DNA of 63,035 nt, filler included, from Lenisia limosa (Eukaryota; Protista; Breviatea), in assembly GCA_001655205.1 (NCBI GenBank). It is 7 parts of 7 records of this genome, joined end to end, with 100 filler letters (N's around TTAATTAATTAA, not from the genome) between each part and the next. Parts side by side here need not be neighbours in the genome. Positions count along the whole stretch, not along the records: positions 55,067 to 63,035 come from LPNZ01008997.1; 6 more parts are not named here. One strand, 5' to 3'. Positions 3,001 through 63,035 of this stretch are shown here, piece after piece. The notes below the pieces were generated by a model. That model was not told the DNA's origin. It worked only from the letters and a program-made list of their open reading frames with translations, and did no database searches. Numbering within the stretch: the first letter of the stretch is position 1; every line of letters begins with the position of its first letter. Position numbers and translations under genes: made by a program.

Positions 3001-5381
3001 AGAGACAAGGCTTTCTCCAACCATTCCCGTTGTGAATGGCTTGCAACGCTGTGAACCAATTATTCAAGTTTCGGTCCAACGCTTCGATAGCACGAAATAT
3101 ATCGTAATATTTGATATGTAGTAGTATATGTAGTCTCTGGGGTATATTGATATAACATAAAAATGACCGTCTTAAATAATTTATTCTTCAATATTTCATG
3201 AGAAAGGCTACAAATACCCCAACTTGAGCCCACGACCTCACCCCCCTCCCAATTACCATTCCAGGTCCAAAAGGCCATGGTTTTGGGGAGCCAATTCAGT
3301 CCGCACGTGCGGTAGTTGTGAGTGGGTAGAAAGGCTGTGAGAAAACCTGATTTGTGAGATGGGGGATGTGTGGCGAGCTCAAAATCATGTTTGACGGGAT
3401 GGTAAGATCCTACCAGCAGCGACAAAAGACACCACATCAACGGGACACATGCTCTTTGTAAACCACTCCCAGATTTCCCTGCAATTGTAAAGCCTTTTCA
3501 AGTTTGTCTTCCATATTCTTAACTGTGCGTTATTAACATTAAGATTTTGCTTCTATCATTCCTTACCTCCCTTTCTTCATCATAATCTACTGTTCAACAT
3601 GATCGTTAGATTTATGACCCTATGTCCTCTATAACCAACCTTGTTGACCCTTCGGGAAAGTAGGCACGCGCGTATTTCACAGTCGTCAACAATGTCGCCG
3701 AATAAGACCTAAAAGGTCAAGGAGAATAGCAATGAAAAAAATATCATATGACAACAACAATACGGTTTATTGGTGTTGTTTAAGCAGCCGCTGACATTGA
3801 AGGAGTGACGCCTGTGTCTCGAGCTTTTGTGAAGTAGAGTTTGTCGATGAGCGCATGAAGCGGTCTCCATGGGAGGGACAAATCAAGACGTTCATGGATA
3901 CTCTTGTATCTACAGTGTTATTTATGTGGAAATGCGTGGGTAGCATAATGTCTAGCTGATATAATATACCCGTTCGAAGCCGACCACACCATCACGTTCA
4001 AACAAAGGATAGGAGATCATATTGGTTGTAGATTAAGTTCACCAATCTTGCCACACAGCTCCGTTACAGTTAAATACCGATCTGGACCTCATATACAGAA
4101 ATATCTCCCAACAACAAAATCAAAGCAACTCTTCCCACTTTATGACAAGGTTGAATGCCCTGAGGAAAGCGACCTGAAGAGTAAGGAAATATAGTGTTGA
4201 CATAAACGCACATATAATACACATTATGCGTATTTTCTTCTATCATCATGGAATATACAGTGACCGGGATAAGTCTTGACAGATTTGCTCGATTTCCAAA
4301 GGAAAATCAGTCAAGACTTATCCCGGTCACTGTGTTTAATATCTTGTTTTGTTCCTGCACAAACCTGGGCGCCAAGAGTGATGCCTGGGAGAAAGGCTGC
4401 AGAATAAAGGATAGACGAGAAGGCGCAGACGTCACCACATGACATGGGGCCACCATAGTCCACGTATCTAAAAGGTCAATGCTGTGTACAACGGAAAATA
4501 GACATTCCGGTTTTACGTTTTTGGCAACCACACTCAAAATCACCCCTAAGCTCAAATGTTTTACTCATCATTTATACAATTGTTTTTAATCCTAAAACTA
4601 CAAAACTGCGCAGAAGTGTTTAGAAGGGCTAAAAAATTCAAACACTGGACATGATCCTGCTCAGACAACTTGAAAGAACCTTGTCATAGGCCGAACCTGC
4701 AGGCTTTTGACAGCCCTCGATCCTCAGCAAGTCAAACTTGCCTTTCCTTTCAGTATGCGCTAAGGTTTCAACCCTTACCACTTGCATGTTTGTTAGACTC
4801 CTTGGTCCGTGTTTCAAGACGGGTCGAAAAACCCATTTTGCCAGTATCCTGACGTTGGAGAGTGGTTAACGCACCTCCTCCTCATACAGCCCTGAAAAGA
4901 CCAGCCTACTGAAGCAGGCTTGAGGCCCATTGAACAGCGCCATTGTTGCCGTCATAGCTTCCAATCTAGGCAGAGTAAATCAAGACCTAAAATAAAACAA
5001 CCCATCTTCACTTCGTATCAACAATCTTGGTTCATCTTGTCATCATTCTGCAGCTAAAACCAAAGCACATGCCCCCATTATCGAAACGGAAACTCCAACA
5101 GCCCCCACCTGAAGACTGTAACTGAGTCCGACAGAGATCGCCTCCAGCCATGCCAGGCTTTCCTCCACAGACGAGACGCGCTGCAGCTCCGGCAGGCAAC
5201 TCACGGCCGAGTTGGGATGATGGCGCTCTTGTGTTGTTGAAAGAGGGAAACCTCCATGACCTTCAGCGATCGAGAGAGTCTGTTTGAACTCCGTTGGTGG
5301 GCTGATTTGACTAGGGCTGTCAGGAGATGGTCTCCTTCTTGAACGGCCAGCAACTGGCGATTCCTCTCTTGTTCGTTTCAT
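1..5381 (-). CDS. PSME4: Proteasome activator PA200/Blm10, N-terminal part, about 13 exons, runs off window start
   Basis: Hand-spliced exons: 5381-5109 (MKRTREE..LSYSLQ), 4965-4910 (IGSYDGNNGAVQWASSLL), 4467-4365 (YVDYGG..), then VAFLRAFNLVIK / YKSIHERLDLSLPWRPLHALIDKLYF / TVKYARAYFPEGST / EIWEWFTKSMCPVD / FLPTHNYRTCGLNWLPK / SIGAVDFSQYMPFVFSRLLKLLRMP / IEGNFHPSYAPGCSKRLSKFL / VTESDIRQFILLVRPIL / HRTESSLRLL..DGVNVNDE. These are collinear with recalled human PSME4 motifs (LELPWRPLY, CRPYFP, MCPFD, IGYIDWDPYVPKIF, SFYHPSN, GVDPND). Confidence 0.9.
1104..1182. mobile_element. MITE family C
   Basis: GACCGGGATAAGTC..GACTTATCCAGGCCACTG. Confidence 0.7.
1578..1654. mobile_element. MITE family C
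   Basis: TA flanks, decayed TIRs. Confidence 0.7.
2671..2747. mobile_element. MITE family C
   Basis: GCGATAAGTCTTGACAC..GTGTCAGGACTTATCGCGGTCAGTG|TA. Confidence 0.75.
4258..4332. mobile_element. MITE family C (subtype a)
   Basis: Perfect 23-bp TIR CAGTGACCGGGATAAGTCTTGAC; flanks TA/TG. Confidence 0.85.
4658..4851 (-). rRNA. 28S (LSU) rRNA fragment, D2 end to D3 region, inside PSME4 intron 2 (4468-4909); non-functional insertion
   Basis: Minus strand reads CAGGATACTGGCAAAATGGGTTTTTCGACCCGTCTTGAAACACGGACCAAGGAGTCTAAC, containing the universal eukaryotic LSU motif. The downstream conserved GGGACCCGAAAG is absent. Confidence 0.9.
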
Positions 5382-55066: not shown

Positions 55067-57630
55067 ACTCTTCCGACCAGAGCCCCACGGAGAAGAAGAA
55101 ACCGCCGCTCCTGAGGGGAGGTTCAAGTGAAAAGGTGAGGGATATTTGGGTGACAATTTGAGGGAGATTTGGGTGAAAAAGAAAAGAGGAAGTAGAAACC
55201 GAGATATTATTACGAGATTAAAGTCATTTTTACTAATTTGGTGGTATTCTACTAGATTTTTAAGTTAGTGATATCGTGTAATATTAGGGACTGGTGGTTT
55301 CGTGCACCTATTAAGGTCCATTTTCTAATATTAAGGAGTATTTACGATAATTTGCGGGGTTTTTACGATATTAGGTAGTATCGCCCAGACCACGACGATT
55401 GTCCAGCTTCCAACGGCCGCGCAGGGAGTCGGAAGTTGTCATTGGTGAGGGGGTATGATTCTTGAGAAGGGGGGTTTATACGATTAGTGTGGGGGTTATC
55501 AAGCTATATGATGATGATTAGGGAGTTTAATGGATTAGTGGGGGTGGGGGGAGTTATGTGATTGTTATTTGAGAATGGTATTTGTGGTTTCTATTTGATA
55601 GTGGGGGAGTACCGCTGCATTAGAACTTTCCGAGCCCTTCTCACTTCCACAGGTCCAATCGAGTGACCCCATAGTAATTTTTGATACGTTTTTGTTTTGC
55701 CCCTATTATGTTTAATGTAAGCCCGTGTAATTACAAGAGGTAGACAATTTGGGAGAAAAGTGCTCATATAAATATGTGGCTTTTGTTGAGCTTCTGAAGT
55801 AAAACTGAAAAAAAGTAGGGCTTCACTTCGGTTCGAAAATAAAAGCTGAATTACTAGATAAATCGTCGAAAACTATGGTCTTTTTCGAATCGAAGTGAAG
55901 CCCTAAACACAAGTGATAAAAGTGGTTTTTATGAATCAGATCAAAAAAAAATATCAATTTTGCAACTAGAGACGTGTTTTTAATAGGCCGAAAAGCCAAG
56001 AAGGGATGCTCTAAAGGAATACTAGATAAAACTTCAATACTTGATAAGATGAATGATGGTAGTGATGGTAATGGTTATGGGGTATCATCCCCTAGTATGG
56101 GGAATAGGGGGGGGGGGGGNNNNNNNNNNNNNNNNNNNNNNNNNNNNNNNNNNNNNNNNNNNNNNNNNNNNNNNNNNNNNNNNNNNNTTTTCGTCACTCC
56201 GAGGAGGACCCGGGAGCGGGTCGGGAAGATTGCAAACCAAAAAGATGTTCGGATTGTTCGAGTGAAAACTAACGATTTGATAATGTTGAACAGCTTTCGT
56301 AGTCAAGGCGGATTACATGGGTGGAGAAAGAAGATTGAGCATATTGGAACCAAGAAGGGGAAAGATGATATATGTATATTCTAAGCCAAAGTAGTGACCA
56401 TGATATTACAGTAAAACTGTCAAGATCGTGTCATTGGAAGATTGGTGATTGAACTAGAATGGACACAAAGTCAGGTTTTACATAGAAATAAAATAGTCGA
56501 AATGATGAGCGAAGATAACACGAGTGCTTATGAAGAGTGCATTAGAGAATCATCTTGTCGGTCATACGAGTGGACATATCCCTGTTAGAAAATGATTGTT
56601 TACGTGAGAATGAATATTATGGAGAATCTATTGAAGAATGATACAAGACCAACACGACTCTCAATAATACTGATATTGGCAAACAGTAAGATAGCATTCA
56701 AACCAATATTCAAAGTGGGCAGTTTGTCATGAGTGACAATGAGAAGGAGACAGTGACAGACAAACCAGAGAAGATGAATGATTGTGATGGTGATGGTTAT
56801 GAGGTATCATCCAAGGGGGGGGGGGTATTCCCTCTTCTGGCTGACAACAGCTGAGGCGACTCTGGTGTTCTGGTGGTTTGCTGCAGGAGTGGGGGTGTGG
56901 GTGGTGTGGTTTGGTAATTTGGACACATTGGTTGGTTGGACCAAGTTGGACCAGGTTGGACAGGGAAGGGAGGGCTGGGGGTTCCCTACAATGTACGATA
57001 CCCCAGGTTCTCAAAATATTCGCTGATTTTTTCGTCCCTCAGATCTGCTTGTCTTATATCGTGCTTGTAGTATCAATCATCATAGCATCATTATCAAGTT
57101 CATTTCCAGCTTTGAAAAATCAAATCAAGGAGGGTGAGGAGTTTTCTTCTTCGTGTGTCTTCTTCAGTTAGTTTAAGCTGAGTCCAAGTGTTCATTAAGT
57201 CTCCACCACAGAAGAAGAGGAAAATGATGACGGTTTGTTCATTCTGGTTGTATACGAATGCTTCTAAGGCAGTATGCTTGCCCAAACCCTCACCAAACCT
57301 TTCTTTTCCCTATATAAACAAACTCTTGATATCTTGTAAAACCTTAGGATTATATACTCCCTAGGGGGAAGCAAACTTGTTGATATAAATACCTCTAGGT
57401 TAATGCACAAAGGTAATCTCTGTGAATAGCTTCTTCTTGGATTGAACTAACTTTTTGCTGAATTCAGGGAAAGTATATGATCCAGAGTCAAATAGTGTCT
57501 GGCTTTGTTCGTCCTCCCCCCCCCCCCAGGNNNNNNNNNNNNNNNNNNNNNNNNNNNNNNNNNNNNNNATATGGGCTATTTTTGGGTCTTGTCTCACGGC
57601 ACAGATTAAGGAATTATTTTCAAGAGTTTT
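55067..57630 (+). CDS. Possible membrane-protein gene fragments
   Basis: Candidate exons FVTPRRTRERVGKIANQKDVRIVR, ICLSYIVLVVSIIIASLSSSFPALKNQIKE|GTGAG, IWAIFGSCLTAQIKE. Strand and joining not firmly resolved. Confidence 0.3.
55816..55905. mobile_element. MITE family A
   Basis: Flanks AAAAAAAG/AACACAAG (6/8). Confidence 0.8.
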
Positions 57631-57939: not shown

Positions 57940-60500
57940 CCGTATTAGAATTTATGTAGCTATAAGATGATTTTAAATATGGGTGGTGAATTACCTCATG
58001 CAGAATGGGTATTTGTTGTGATTATCAGGATGGCCAATAAATGAAGTCATGCCTATAATATGTTAAAAATAATGTACAAGGAGAATTTGGATGTATGTTA
58101 ATTGTTCAATATCACATAATCAATATATTGTCGTCGTTATTTTTGAGTTGTGTTTCACCTAATTAGGGCCGAACTCCCATTCTTGCTGCCAGTCTGGACG
58201 GTCACATTGAAGTGGTTAAGTATCTCGTGTCAAATGGAGCAGACATCCACAAACCAACAAATGATGTGGGTGGGAAATCCCTCATAAAGACGTCAATATG
58301 CTGCTAATGGGCGGATACTGATGAAAGTGAAATTAATCTATATGTGTATTTATGTAGAGTACCGGATAATAATGTATTAGAATTTATGTAGCTATAAGAT
58401 GATTTTAAATATGGGTGGTGAATTACCTCATGCNNNNNNNNNNNNNNNNNNNNNNNNNNNNNNNNNNNNNNNNNNNNNNNNNNNNNNNNNNNNNNNNNNN
58501 NNNNNNNNNNNCTTGCTGCCAGTCAGGACGGTCACATTGAAGTGGTTAAGTATCTCACGTCAAATGGAGCAGATATCCACAAACCAATGAATAATGTGGG
58601 TGGGAAATCACCCTCATTAACATGTGTTGGTATGTTTGTTAATGGTTGAAGTTATAGTAACCTATATGTGTGTTTCTGTCAAGTGCCATACGATGTGGAA
58701 GGTGAGTTTCTGGTAATACGATTAATTTTTCCTATATCGTTGGGAAATTACCTCATACATAAGATCTGTTTATTGTGATTATCAGGCCTATAACAGATGA
58801 TTTTAAATATGGGTGGTGAATTACCTCATTCAGAATGGGTATTTGTTGCGATTATCAGGATGGCCAATAAATGAAGTCATGCCTATAATATGTTAAAAAA
58901 ATGTACAAGGAGAATTTGGATGTATGTTAAGTGTTCAATATCACATAATCAATATATTGTCGTCGTTATTTTTGAGTTGTGTTTCACCTAATTAGGGCGC
59001 AACTCCCATTTATGTTGCCAGTCAGAACGGTCACATTGAAGTGGTTAAGTATCTCATGTCAAATGGAGCAGATATCCACAAACCAATGAATAATGTGGGT
59101 GGGAAATCACCCTCATTAACATGTGTTAGTATGTTTGTTAATGGTTGAAGTTATAGTAACCTATATGTGTGTTTATGTCAAGTGCCATATAATGTGGAAG
59201 GTGAGTTTCTGGTAACACGATTATTTTTTCTGATATCGTTGGGAAATTACCTCATGCATAATGTCGTTTAGTGTGATTATCAGGCCTATAACAGATGATT
59301 TTAAATATGGGTGATGAATTACCTCATGCAGAATGGGTATTTGTTGCGATTATCAGGGTGGCCAATAAATGAAGCCATGCCTATACAAGGAGAATTTGGA
59401 TGTATGTTAATTGTTCAATATCACATAATCAATATATTGTCGTNNNNNNNNNNGCTGCCAGTCTGAAAGGTCACATTGAAGTGGTTAAGTATCTCGTGTC
59501 AAATGGAGCAGATATCCACAAATCAACAAAGGATGTGGGTGGGAAATCCCTCATAAAGACGTCAATATGCTGCCGATGAGCGGATACTGATGGAAGTGAT
59601 ATTAATCTATATGTGTATTTATGCAGAGTACCGAATAATAAAGTATTAGAATTTATGTAGCTATAAGATGATTTTTGATATGGGTGGTGAATGACCTCAT
59701 GTAGAATGTGTATTTGTTGCGATTATCAGGACGGCCAACAGTTGAAGTCATACCTATGTAATGTTACAAATAATGTACAAGGAGAATTTGGATGTATGTT
59801 AATTGTTCAATATCACATAATCAATATATTGTCGTTGTTATTTTTGAGTTGTGTTTCACCTAATTAGGGCGCAACTCCCATTTATACTGCCAGTCAGAAA
59901 GGTCACATTGAAGTGGTTAAGTATCTCGTGTCAAATGGAGCAGATATCCACAAACCAACAAATGATGTGGGTGGGGAATCCCTCATAAAGACGTCAATGT
60001 GCTGCTGATGGGCGGATACTGATTAAAGTGATGTTAATCTATATGTGTATTTATGTAGAGTACCGGAAAATTTGATATTAGAATTTGTGTAGCTATAAAA
60101 TGATTTTTGATATGGGTGGTGAATTTCCTACTACAGAATGAGTATTTGATGCGATTATCAGGACCGCCAATATTTAAGTCATGACCTATTTAGGGCGAAA
60201 CTCCCTTTTATATTGCCAGTCAGAACGGTCACATTGAAGTGATTAGGTATCTCGTGTCAAATGGAGCAGATATAAACGAACCAATAAAGGATGTGGGTGG
60301 GAAAATCCTCATAAAGACGTCAATATACTGCCATGCAGGGCGGATAATGGTTGAAGTGATATTATTTACCTATATGTGTTTTTATGTACATTATCGGAGA
60401 ATAGGGAATTAGAATTTTGTTGCAATAGAATTATTTTTGATATGGGTGGCGAATTACCTCATGCAGAATGTGTATTTGTTGCGATTATCAGGACGGCCAA
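57940..60500 (+). repeat. Tandem exon+intron duplication units (about 330-500 bp) underlying the ankyrin array
   Basis: Intron blocks such as GATTTTAAATATGGGTGGTGAATTACCTCATGCAGAATGGGTATTTGTTG and GTGTTTCACCTAATTAG recur in near-identical form between exons. Confidence 0.9.
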
Positions 60501-60903
60501 TATTATTAACTACCCGGGAAAGTTTGGTCCTAGCTGGAAATATTACCGACTATTTAATTAGTAATAATGTCGACCAGAATGATATGACACCTCTACATGC
60601 GGCAGCTATGAATGGACATTCGGACGTTGTTGAGTATCTCATTGCCAATAAAGCTGCTGTTACCTCCACCAATAAGGTATGTATTGTCTTCATATGTGCT
60701 TCAGTTAGAAACTGTGTTTAGTGTTTTTGCTTTCTATATCTTTAACATATGCTATATTAGCTATATATAGTGTATATTCATATTTCCGTCGGGTGTAATT
60801 TAAGTATAAGAACACACCTCTACACATTGCCGCTTCAAAAGGATTTTTGGAAGTTGTCAGGCATCTCATTGAGGCAAAGTCAATTAATGACTCCAGTAAT
60901 CAG
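58167..60903 (+). CDS. Ankyrin-repeat protein, one 33-aa repeat per 99-nt phase-0 exon (8 exons); start and stop exons not identified
   Basis: Exons 58167-58265, ~58497-58595, 58996-59094, ~59436-59534, 59868-59966, 60194-60292, 60578-60676, 60805-60903 (5' ends of exons 2 and 4 lie in gaps). Consensus GxTPxxxASxxGHIEVVKYLVSNGADIHKPxxx; donors GTGGGT or GTATG. Confidence 0.92.
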
Positions 60904-61072: not shown

Positions 61073-63035
61073 GGTCAGTGCATAAAAAGGGGCCCAGTGC
61101 ATAAAAAGGGGCCCAATTTTTGAAAATTGTATTTTCTAAAATACGTATCATCTAGTTCCTCTTATTATCTATTTGTTAAGCTTAGAGGCGATAAATGATA
61201 AGTGAAAAATGTATTTAAAAAACATAACAAGGGAAACAATGCAATCAAAAAGCTATTTTCGAGAGCGACGGCCTAAAATAGTTTAATCTAGTATACATAA
61301 AAGAGATAAATTTTTCATCAATATGAGACAAACCTTTTTTGTTGGATTGTTTAGCTGGGGTTTCCGTTTTGCGAGCTAAGTAGAGTAAGTAAAACCCGAA
61401 TAAGTAGCTCTTACCAAGAATCTTGGCATTCTCTTTTTCTGTCTTTTTTACAGCTCTCTGAGCTAAATAATCAATTGATGTAATGAAAATCCTGACACTC
61501 ATCCTCAAAATTTGATTTTTTTTTATCCCTTTTAAGTGAAATCCTACCAATAGTATTGACGCGCTGCTCCTCCTTTTTCTTTTGTATTATATCATCCGCT
61601 TCCTTCGGTCTTCAGGCGTAATTATTGTGATTTTCTCGCGAACAGTCACTGCTTCATACGCAATAGGAACTGTCTGCTTGACATTCTGACGGTTCGCACA
61701 GGGTAGGACATCGGGATGGGAATCATAAAAAGCAACCTCAGCTTCTGTCAACTCATCTCTCACCAAAGTTATTGCTTCCCATCCTTGCCGGGAAATAGCA
61801 GGATCTTGAGATTTGGCAACTTTCAGGTGCTGAATGATGATGGGAGTGTTTATCACACAGGAGTAAAGTGCAGAACGGGGTAGAGGGCAAAGAGGTAAGG
61901 AAAATGCGCCTTCGGGATTGGGTAAGTGGGCAGCAAGGCGAGAGGGGTCGATCGTCACTTCATTTTTGCCGCGACTTATTAGAATTCCAGCAGCAGAGAA
62001 CGCGTTGTCTACATGATCAGGATGAGTTGTAATATAAAACGCTCTTAAGCGCGCAGCAGCGATTGTGGGTAGTTTTGTGACTCCTTCAGGGATTGGTGAT
62101 GATAGTAATTGAGTAAGTTCGCTTCTCATTGACCTCTTTGTGGTTCCAAATGTTCGTAAATCCAGTGGCTGTGTCACTTGTGAGGTGTGGGAGGGGAAGA
62201 GGTAAAGGTAAATATGATGATGCAGAAGGTACTCCAGTGCCAAGGCCAAAAGGCGAGATACATGTCCGTCAGTTATGAGTGCGGCAGCGGTATCCGGTGG
62301 CAGGTTGAGTTGACGGCGCTTGGCCTCAACTGCAGGGACGAAGTAGTCATGTATCCAGGTACAGAATGATTCACCCGTCTGAATTATGAAAAACCGACCA
62401 AGTAGATATTCTCTATTTATCACCACAAACCTGCCAGCCATTTGGAGATTCGATAACCTTCGCTGAGTTAGTCTCAAGAATTGTTCGCTCTGTCGAAACG
62501 GTCTTCTGGCCAAGCAACAAGACAGGAGGGACCCTCGCATCATAGTAGTGTGAGAGCTAGAAGAGTAAAAAAATTGTGATAACTTTACCCCAAGTAACGC
62601 TTACCCAATTGTGCCAATCAAAGTGATGTGGTTGGGAGGTGTAGGTGCTCTTGCGTAAGTCTTCGTTGCTTCGGCAAGAGTGACCACCTTGGTAGCGGTT
62701 TCACTGGTGACGTCAACCATGCTCTCATCCATGTTCCAAATAAGTGAAGCGTTGATGCTAAGCTCGTCGAATGATTTGCTGAGGGAGTTCACGTGCTGCA
62801 TGAGGCGCTCAGGTGTGAGTGCCTGTTCTCTTGCTTTATCAAGGCGGTTGGGGGTCTATGACGAGTGAGACAGAGCATACTTTAATATTGTAATTTACAC
62901 AACATTTGCCCATCATACTATGACTTTGAAAACATCAGCATATTGTTCCATGAACTATTTAAACCACTGCTTTGGCGGAGGTGCGGAGGGTGGGTTAGCA
63001 GAGTTTTTCTTGCAAATATCAAACACCTATATATT
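61073..63035 (-). mobile_element. pogo/Fot1-like DNA transposon (DDE_1, DD35D), partial; transposase has introns and is probably a pseudogene
   Basis: IWNMDES, VPPVLLLGQK, SPNGWQ|TGESFCTWIHDYFVP, LITDGHVSR..FPSHTSQVTQPLD (35 residues between D2 and D3). In-frame TAG at 62955-62957 (QWFK*FME). Candidate terminus TA|GGTCAGTGCATAAAAAGGGGCCCA with internal direct repeat at 61073-61116. Confidence 0.85.

Follow-up and report, generated by a model that had tools for sequence, protein, structure and literature searches.

Lenisia limosa (Breviatea) carries an array of eight ankyrin (ANK) exons at positions 58167-60903 of the 63,035-nt stretch of assembly GCA_001655205.1 analysed here (the window), within the piece that comes from record LPNZ01008997.1. 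Each exon encodes one ANK repeat, and the first six exons, together with their introns, are young tandem copies of one cassette. We read the array, with a probability of roughly 0.55, as the C-terminal ANK domain of an expressed, spliced gene of an intron-rich eukaryote, a protein-binding module whose binding face would be diverging fast after repeat expansion, under relaxed constraint and probable positive selection. The exon structure, the duplication, the splicing and the distribution of substitutions are observed directly, and the mechanism of duplication, the selection regime and the binding function are drawn from them. The data cover one locus and one sample.

Exon organization of the array

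Besides the window, we used L001, a gapless 10,128-nt contig of a second assembly (ENA ERZ3820729, NODE_1671) that is collinear and nearly identical with the piece, and assembled contigs of one polyA RNA run of the same study, a form of evidence from which rare isoforms are lost. The gene product is represented in the protein library solely by an 86-aa open reading frame (ORF) around E7, which a word search retrieved and through which L001 was reached. L001 and the DNA run X1 may share reads with the window, so agreement among the three is no independent replication. The exons, E1-E8, are as follows.

58167-58265, + strand: E1, ANK exon, 99 nt, phase 0, GRTPILAASLDGHIEVVKYLVSNGADIHKPTND; 32 bits against Pfam Ank; AG/GT-bounded ORF, without an RNA contig
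58512-58595 (visible part), + strand: E2, ANK exon, 84 of 99 nt, 5′ end in a gap; sequence uncertain, the same as E3 in L001
58996-59094, + strand: E3, ANK exon, 99 nt, GATPIYVASQNGHIEVVKYLMSNGADIHKPMNN; an RNA contig spans the complete exon with spliced flanks
59454-59534 (visible part), + strand: E4, ANK exon, 81 of 99 nt, 5′ end in a gap, ..AASLKGHIEVVKYLVSNGADIHKSTKD; RNA joint 59534 to 59868, GT..AG; hidden 5′ end and CTG codon supplied by an RNA contig
59868-59966, + strand: E5, ANK exon, 99 nt, GATPIYTASQKGHIEVVKYLVSNGADIHKPTND; joined to E4 in RNA
60194-60292, + strand: E6, ANK exon, 99 nt, GETPFYIASQNGHIEVIRYLVSNGADINEPIKD; last 9 nt joined to E7 in RNA, DNA contig with 0 differences
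60578-60676, + strand: E7, older ANK exon, 99 nt, NDMTPLHAAAMNGHSDVVEYLIANKAAVTSTNK; RNA contig
60811-60903, + strand: E8, final ANK exon of the piece, 93 nt, 31 codons, phase 0, cap-like, NTPLHIAASKGFLEVVRHLIEAKSINDSSNQ; RNA joint 60676 to 60811

All eight exons lie on the + strand, are open and have intact AG/GT borders. They are in phase 0 and hold one ankyrin repeat apiece, as a preliminary description of this DNA had proposed; the exception concerns E8, which is 93 nt long and starts at 60811, rather than 99 nt long from 60805. E1, E3, E5, E6, E7 and E8 score 30.5-38.1 bits against the Pfam Ank profile (PF00023; gathering threshold 21.1 bits), while E2 and E4 align in register with the other repeats. 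A six-frame scan of the whole piece with a hidden Markov model (HMM) revealed no further ANK-like segment on either strand. The piece is AT-rich (~30-48% GC), and the exons of the array contain no insertions or deletions. From alignment to DARPin (designed ankyrin repeat protein) and ankyrin chains, we infer a solenoid fold of stacked helix-turn-helix and beta-hairpin units.

Transcription and splicing

The RNA contigs contain two chains of spliced joints, E3-E4-E5 and E6-E7-E8. Specifically, E3 is preceded by an exon end of the E2/E3 type (KPMNN) and followed by an exon start that fits E4, E4 is joined to E5 (59534 to 59868, GT..AG), the end of E6 is joined to position 60578, and E7 is joined to E8 (60676 to 60811). 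Exon skipping, which the preliminary description had envisaged, is not seen: the contigs show consecutive, constitutive joints only, a form of evidence from which rare isoforms may drop out. Beyond 60903, on the 3′ side, RNA joins E8 to 64 nt that read SYRF and then TGA; this sequence is absent from the window. The ORF appears to end 4 codons after E8, and the ANK array appears to be C-terminal.

Exons and introns were duplicated together

Alignments show that E1-E6 and their introns are young tandem copies of a 326-499-nt exon+intron cassette, which bears out the earlier proposal that the first six exons are recent exon+intron duplicates. E6 is the most diverged of these young copies.

58266-60577, + strand: cassette introns I1-I6, with two diverged 5′ types and 3′ ~200 nt common to all, from alignments
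58075-58166, 58904-58995, 59384-59443 (cut by a gap) and 59776-59867, with a further copy inside the gap at 58434-58511, + strand: near-invariant 92-nt intron 3′ end

The 5′ part of the intron is of type A after E1, E4, E5 and E6, and of type B after E2 and E3, with a variable-site density of 0.48 among I1-I4 (A vs B). In addition, the motif 'GAATTACCTCAT...GATTATCAGG' occurs once more inside the B-type introns (58680-58790; 59180-59285), through a partial intra-intron duplication that the A-type introns lack.

The last 92 nt of the intron are conserved far above the exon or the remaining intron, with 2/92 variable sites among the four complete copies. Together with the first 18 nt of the exon, they form a junction block of ~110 nt that is nearly identical in five copies. 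DNA depth over the 92-nt block is 126, compared with ~27, which equals ~4.7 copies; since this fits ~5 copies, there is no large repeat collapse. The block gave no Rfam match above threshold and no significant inverted repeats, the intron folds no better than shuffled sequence (z = 0.8), and no conserved C/D-box motifs were found by eye. Possible explanations are a recent conversion tract, a splicing element and a substrate for recombination.

The mosaic identity of the cassettes and the near-identical ~110-nt block in five copies suggest that unequal crossing-over between homologous introns raised the number of cassettes, and that the copies were kept partly homogenised by gene conversion. 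E7 and E8 are older, unique repeats, and the expansion was therefore internal.

Substitutions concentrate on the predicted binding face

Among E1-E6, variation affects 17 of the 33 codons and alters the amino acid in 15. Positions G1, T3, P4, A8, S9, G12-V16, Y19, L20 and S22-I27 are invariant, and the structural framework (TP, AS, GHIEVVKYL, SNGAD) stays fixed. The young repeats are 85, 79, 85, 85 and 70% identical to E5, with a mean column identity of 80%, and E1 and E3 share 24/33 residues. The pairwise counts in the preliminary description were reproduced: E3 and E5 differ at 7 nt, all in residue-changing codons, and E1 and E5 at 9 nt, one of them synonymous. Changes in the framework are conservative (I/F, V/I, K/R, V/M/T); those on the surface are radical (R/A/E, L/Q, D/N/K, K/E). 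Furthermore, the variable sites are clustered, six codons of E1-E5 having two each (P 0.0035).

The DARPin library of Binz et al. in 2003 reportedly randomised positions 2, 3, 5, 13, 14 and 33. As DARPin numbering equals the exon position plus 3, these correspond to exon positions 32, 33, 2, 10, 11 and 30, and all six vary in the array (hypergeometric P 1.9e-4 for E1-E5 and 0.0045 for E1-E6). Exon positions 2, 10 and 11 are also DARPin variable positions in PDB alignments. Another DARPin library set comprises positions 2, 3, 5, 10, 13 and 14 (PMC3308923), and these all vary too. Outside the six library positions, nine more vary (5, 6, 7, 17, 18, 21, 28, 29 and 31). The earlier statement that changes occur almost only at binding-surface codons is supported, with a fixed framework and variation concentrated on the surface positions canonical for ANK repeats.

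Four-gamete violations occur in nine of the 15 informative site pairs, among them adjacent nucleotides and sites separated by 1-5 nt; the key violations lie between sites 1-14 nt apart and are phased by single reads. Parsimony homoplasy exceeds that in neutral simulations (P 0.009-0.04), even with only 33-45 sites free to vary, indicating that the same sites have apparently been hit repeatedly, or shuffled through very short conversions. In the reading that we favour, the copies have diverged after duplication almost only via amino-acid-changing substitutions, some of them recurrent. The changes lie at the beta-turn, at the end of helix 1 and in the inter-repeat loop, the parts that make up the predicted concave ligand-binding face, with the structural framework kept.

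Tests of selection

The variable sites comprise 22 nonsynonymous and 2 synonymous ones (21:2 with the L001 exons), and the binomial probability of so few synonymous sites is 0.03-0.04 at a kappa of ~2, as estimated from the introns. The proportion of nonsynonymous differences (pN) exceeds that of synonymous differences (pS) in every pairwise comparison. Under the GY94 codon model, the nonsynonymous-to-synonymous rate ratio omega is 4.8 for the five secure exons and 6.3 for six exons, and fixing omega at 1 is worse by 2.7-3.6 log-likelihood units (likelihood-ratio P ~0.01-0.02). These values suggest, and do not show, positive selection. Diversifying selection, as put forward in the preliminary description, is plausible, at roughly even odds: the 22:2 ratio and an omega of ~5-6 speak for it, and an exon rate equal to that of the mid-intron, with two synonymous changes only, does not.

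The co-duplicated introns provide a built-in neutral yardstick, a rare advantage of this locus. The general claim that the exon is more variable than the intron was rejected, as the mid-intron plus the last 92 nt gives P 0.12. Variability in the exon exceeds that in the intron only against the last 92 nt (Fisher P 0.0005-0.0009); the 92-nt block, not the exon, is the odd element.

Several observations weigh against the reading of fast, partly selected divergence in an expressed gene. Variable-site density in the exons is 0.16-0.17, compared with 0.165 in the mid-intron and 0.14 in A-type introns, and is far below the 0.48 of the A-vs-B 5′ introns. Because exon density equals mid-intron density, the nonsynonymous rate (dN) is only about neutral by the intron yardstick. 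The value of omega above 1 hinges on 2 synonymous changes among ~26 synonymous sites; the alignment has 33 codons and consists of 5-6 short, non-independent, recombining sequences, two of them assembly-dependent. Adjacent double changes occur in three codons and may each have been one mutational event; counted once, they raise P to ~0.06. E1 and E2 are covered by none of the RNA contigs, and the 5′ end of the gene and its N-terminal domains were not located in the L001 sequence that reaches 6.5 kb upstream of E1. Finally, the two assemblies differ at 7 nucleotides in E2 and E4, all of them in variable codons and beside gaps.

Assembly gaps and the second assembly

The preliminary description had placed the 5′ ends of E2 and E4 in gaps. 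This is confirmed, and L001 closes both gaps in frame, completing each exon to 99 nt.

58434-58511, no strand: gap of 78 N; L001 6777-6956 has 180 nt here, the 3′ part of intron 1 and the first 15 nt of E2
59444-59453, no strand: gap of 10 N; L001 7889-7938 has 50 nt here, 32 nt of intron 3 and 18 nt of E4

In E2, L001 differs from the window at 5 nt (58512, 58513, 58516, 58527 and 58558) and is identical to E3; in E4, it differs at 2 nt (59454 and 59464), its 5′ part being identical to E5. The assignment of variants to repeats is thus partly assembly-dependent. The window version of E4 is backed by RNA, in which the exon start that follows a KPMNN-type exon end is E5-like except at two nucleotides, one of the differences being CAG>CTG. 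The E3-type DNA contig has a depth of 52, compared with ~27 in unique flanks (X1), which fits two identical copies, that is, the E2 of L001. Since L001 differs and the E3 contig has this depth, the E2 sequence quoted earlier (..LAASQDG..) is insecure; the 5′ end of E4 depends on the assembly as well.

Upstream of the array, runs of G or C at 56100-56119, 56814-56824 and 57516-57530 lie at or near two further gaps, 56120-56187 and 57531-57568, for which the window writes 68 and 38 N and L001 has 47 and 22 nt. Outside the array, window and L001 differ by 1 substitution and a 2-nt indel (61284; 61328-61329), and are not byte-identical even in unique sequence.

Alternative explanations

The array could be the neutral aftermath of an expansion, in which purifying selection holds the framework, the surface drifts, and omega above 1 reflects noise, multinucleotide mutations and conversion. 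Nonsynonymous variability close to intron variability, a test carried by 2 synonymous sites whose P (0.01-0.06) varies with the method, and the generality of fast 'horizontal' divergence in new repeats (PMC5120217) are what such drift would produce. We nevertheless consider it doubtful, given that pN is greater than pS in all pairwise comparisons, that adjacent-nucleotide homoplasy and multi-hit codons exceed simulations with 33-45 free sites, and that the library positions vary 6/6. A decaying pseudogene array without constraint would likewise show overall exon divergence similar to intron divergence, and a pogo-like transposon does lie just downstream. Such decay is hardly credible for eight open exons with intact AG/GT sites, no exon indels and spliced polyA RNA, where substitutions spare the framework and strike the canonical variable positions (P 0.0002-0.005). 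It is also very unlikely that the cassettes or their variant combinations arose from a mis-threaded, collapsed repeat in short-read de Bruijn assemblies. The window gaps do fall exactly at two cassette junctions, the Logan contigs are fragmented across the array, and L001 and the window conflict at 7 variable positions, with the L001 E2 equal to E3 and its E4 5′ end equal to E5. Against this, both assemblies have six cassettes of the same lengths in the same order, the shared-block depth of 126 vs 27 fits ~5 copies, RNA contigs give independent evidence for E3, for the L-K combination of E4 and for the joints E4-E5 and E6-E7-E8, and the key four-gamete violations, 1-14 nt apart, are phased by single reads. 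By depth, the collapse that the preliminary description had named as a possible source of error is absent on a large scale; within the exons, the assemblies differ in E2 and at the 5′ end of E4.

A different proposal, made in the preliminary description, is a dedicated immune-like recognition receptor whose cassette exons are skipped, shuffled or converted under diversifying selection, an ANK analogue of the Ectocarpus or fungal NLR arrays. In its favour, the exons are in phase 0 and of equal length, which would keep any skip or swap in frame; omega exceeds 1, and codons of the binding face show repeated hits; the near-identical ~110-nt intron-exon junction block could serve conversion or recombination; the nearest repeat-profile relatives include fungal NLR-like and NACHT-containing proteins; and both published precedents have the same signature (PMC3341825, PMC4986451). 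The search of the flanks for the domains expected of a receptor ran the other way: 6.5 kb upstream (L001) and 2.1 kb downstream (window) yielded no NACHT, NB-ARC, ROC-COR, kinase, transmembrane or other signalling domain. Moreover, the RNA contigs contain no skipped form, though contigs lose rare isoforms, the introns hold no inactive or antisense repeat exons of the Ectocarpus kind, the evidence comes from one locus in one sample, and the likeness to NLR ANK repeats is generic, with no match closer than ~47 bits per repeat. We regard the receptor as speculative and unlikely. A bolder version, which we consider quite improbable, would make the locus a protist diversification device, with the ~110-nt junction block as a substrate for conversion, recombination or splicing choice and with repeats swapped, converted or skipped, an ankyrin counterpart of the lamprey VLR, ROCO-LRR and fungal NLR systems.

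Genomic context and relatives

In the 6.5 kb upstream of E1, L001 contains low-complexity ORFs only. Gene calls at L001 1-492, 2024-3196 and 4969-5535 were rejected as genes, having internal stops in the standard code and low complexity. A low-complexity tandem region at L001 2279-2665 translates into GGYLGG and IIWG(R) repeats from one strand, and the opposite strand gives PPDN repeats. Two sub-threshold Rfam matches in L001, MIR319 at 4190-4291 (- strand; 30.8 vs 54 bits) and mir-1249 at 3046-3146 (+ strand; 28.4 vs 83 bits), are most likely due to chance.

Downstream of the array, the window contains a transposon.

61587-62801, - strand: Pogo/Tigger-like DDE_1 transposase; the 318-aa ORF at 61587-62543 matches PF03184

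A second ORF of 66 aa (62601-62801), upstream of the first and separate from it, contains an 'NMDE' motif, so the transposase is split by a frameshift or an intron. The element follows closely after E8 and is probably located in the last intron of the ANK gene or in its 3′ region. A search found only two ENA relatives, with 82% and 43% identity, and the Atlas neighbours of the transposase are scattered across taxa.

A profile search of 1.84 billion representative proteins returned generic, consensus-like giant ANK proteins (fungal NLR-like, the beetle Zophobas, JGI), and no near-identical relative of the repeat among these representatives, the closest match being at ~47 bits per repeat. At the DNA level, a metagenome scan gave no match to the exact exon-core 27-mer. 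A degenerate GHIEVVKYL pattern was found at 120 metagenome loci, none of them close at the DNA level and none with an exon-per-repeat layout.

Comparison with known systems

The top solved-structure matches of the array are DARPins and consensus-designed ANK proteins (PDB 6mol, 5le2, 4gpm and 1n0r). The array has in common with DARPins a fixed framework and variation at all six library positions. It differs in being a natural gene and in varying at nine further positions, including the histidine position of TPLH (L/Y), and only ~55-60% of its residues match a DARPin module in PDB alignments. The likeness, though real, comes close to being circular, since natural ANK variability was the basis on which DARPin libraries were designed.

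In the canonical ankyrins ANK1/2/3, exons of 99 or 198 bp encode most of the membrane-binding repeats. Two entries for these ankyrins, PDB 4rlv and 7tw3, are among the structure matches, and the array resembles them in its exon-equals-repeat layout and its 33-residue period. The canonical repeats, unlike those of the array, are ancient and individually conserved between species, and they are separated by introns that did not arise by recent duplication.

Repeat proteins usually expand through internal tandem duplication (Bjorklund et al. 2006, PMC1553488), and as a general rule new repeat copies undergo accelerated 'horizontal' divergence, with selection either relaxed or positive (Persi, Wolf and Koonin 2016, PMC5120217). 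The array fits both: its internal repeats are duplicated while the terminal E7 and E8 stay distinct, and it does not differ in principle from biphasic repeat evolution, of which it is a young, clean example with introns as witnesses. As a repeat expansion it is of an ordinary type and not unprecedented, and the signature of divergence on its binding face is fairly clean.

The closest parallels are the ANK arrays of fungal NLRs and the exon-per-repeat LRR (leucine-rich repeat) and TPR (tetratricopeptide repeat) genes of Ectocarpus. Fungal NLR/STAND genes carry ANK (also TPR and WD) arrays of near-identical tandem repeats under concerted evolution, and the concave face, on the inner helix and the beta-hairpin/loop, has positions that are hypervariable or positively selected; the ANK repeats lie in a single exon beside NACHT or NB-ARC, and polymorphism in repeat number is documented (Dyrka et al. 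2014, PMC4986451). The Lenisia array shares with them the fixed framework, concave-face variation, probable concerted evolution and consensus-like repeats, and fungal NLR-like and NACHT-containing proteins are among its best profile matches. In contrast to the fungal arrays, each of its repeats is an exon of its own with a co-duplicated intron, and no NOD domain was found in its flanks (6.5 kb upstream, 2.1 kb downstream). Its repeats are 70-88% identical, lower than the fungal ones and short of at least 85% identity over at least 100 residues.

In Ectocarpus, every repeat of the ROCO-LRR and NB-ARC-TPR genes has its own phase-0 exon, whose length is constant. Exons and introns were recently duplicated together, ligand-face codons show an excess of nonsynonymous changes and positive selection, the introns hold inactive or antisense repeat exons, and ROC-COR or NB-ARC domains are linked to the repeats (Zambounis et al. 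2012, PMC3341825). The same genes are also the subject of PMC11378527. Common to both systems are one-repeat phase-0 exons (in Lenisia, seven of 99 nt and one of 93 nt) and duplicated introns. Unlike in Ectocarpus, the repeat is ANK (99 nt) rather than LRR (72 nt) or TPR, the six-frame HMM scan detected no inactive or antisense repeat exons in the array introns, and the available flanks contain no detectable GTPase or NB-ARC.

That repeat arrays act as evolvable binding surfaces is a rule known so far from the LRR/TPR exons of brown algae and, in fungal NLRs, from ANK/TPR/WD arrays contained in single exons. If the signal holds, the locus would extend this rule to ankyrin repeats and to an unsampled eukaryotic lineage. 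The main value of the locus is as a clean, young case of repeat expansion through exon-cassette duplication, and as a pointer to the rest of the exon family in this organism.

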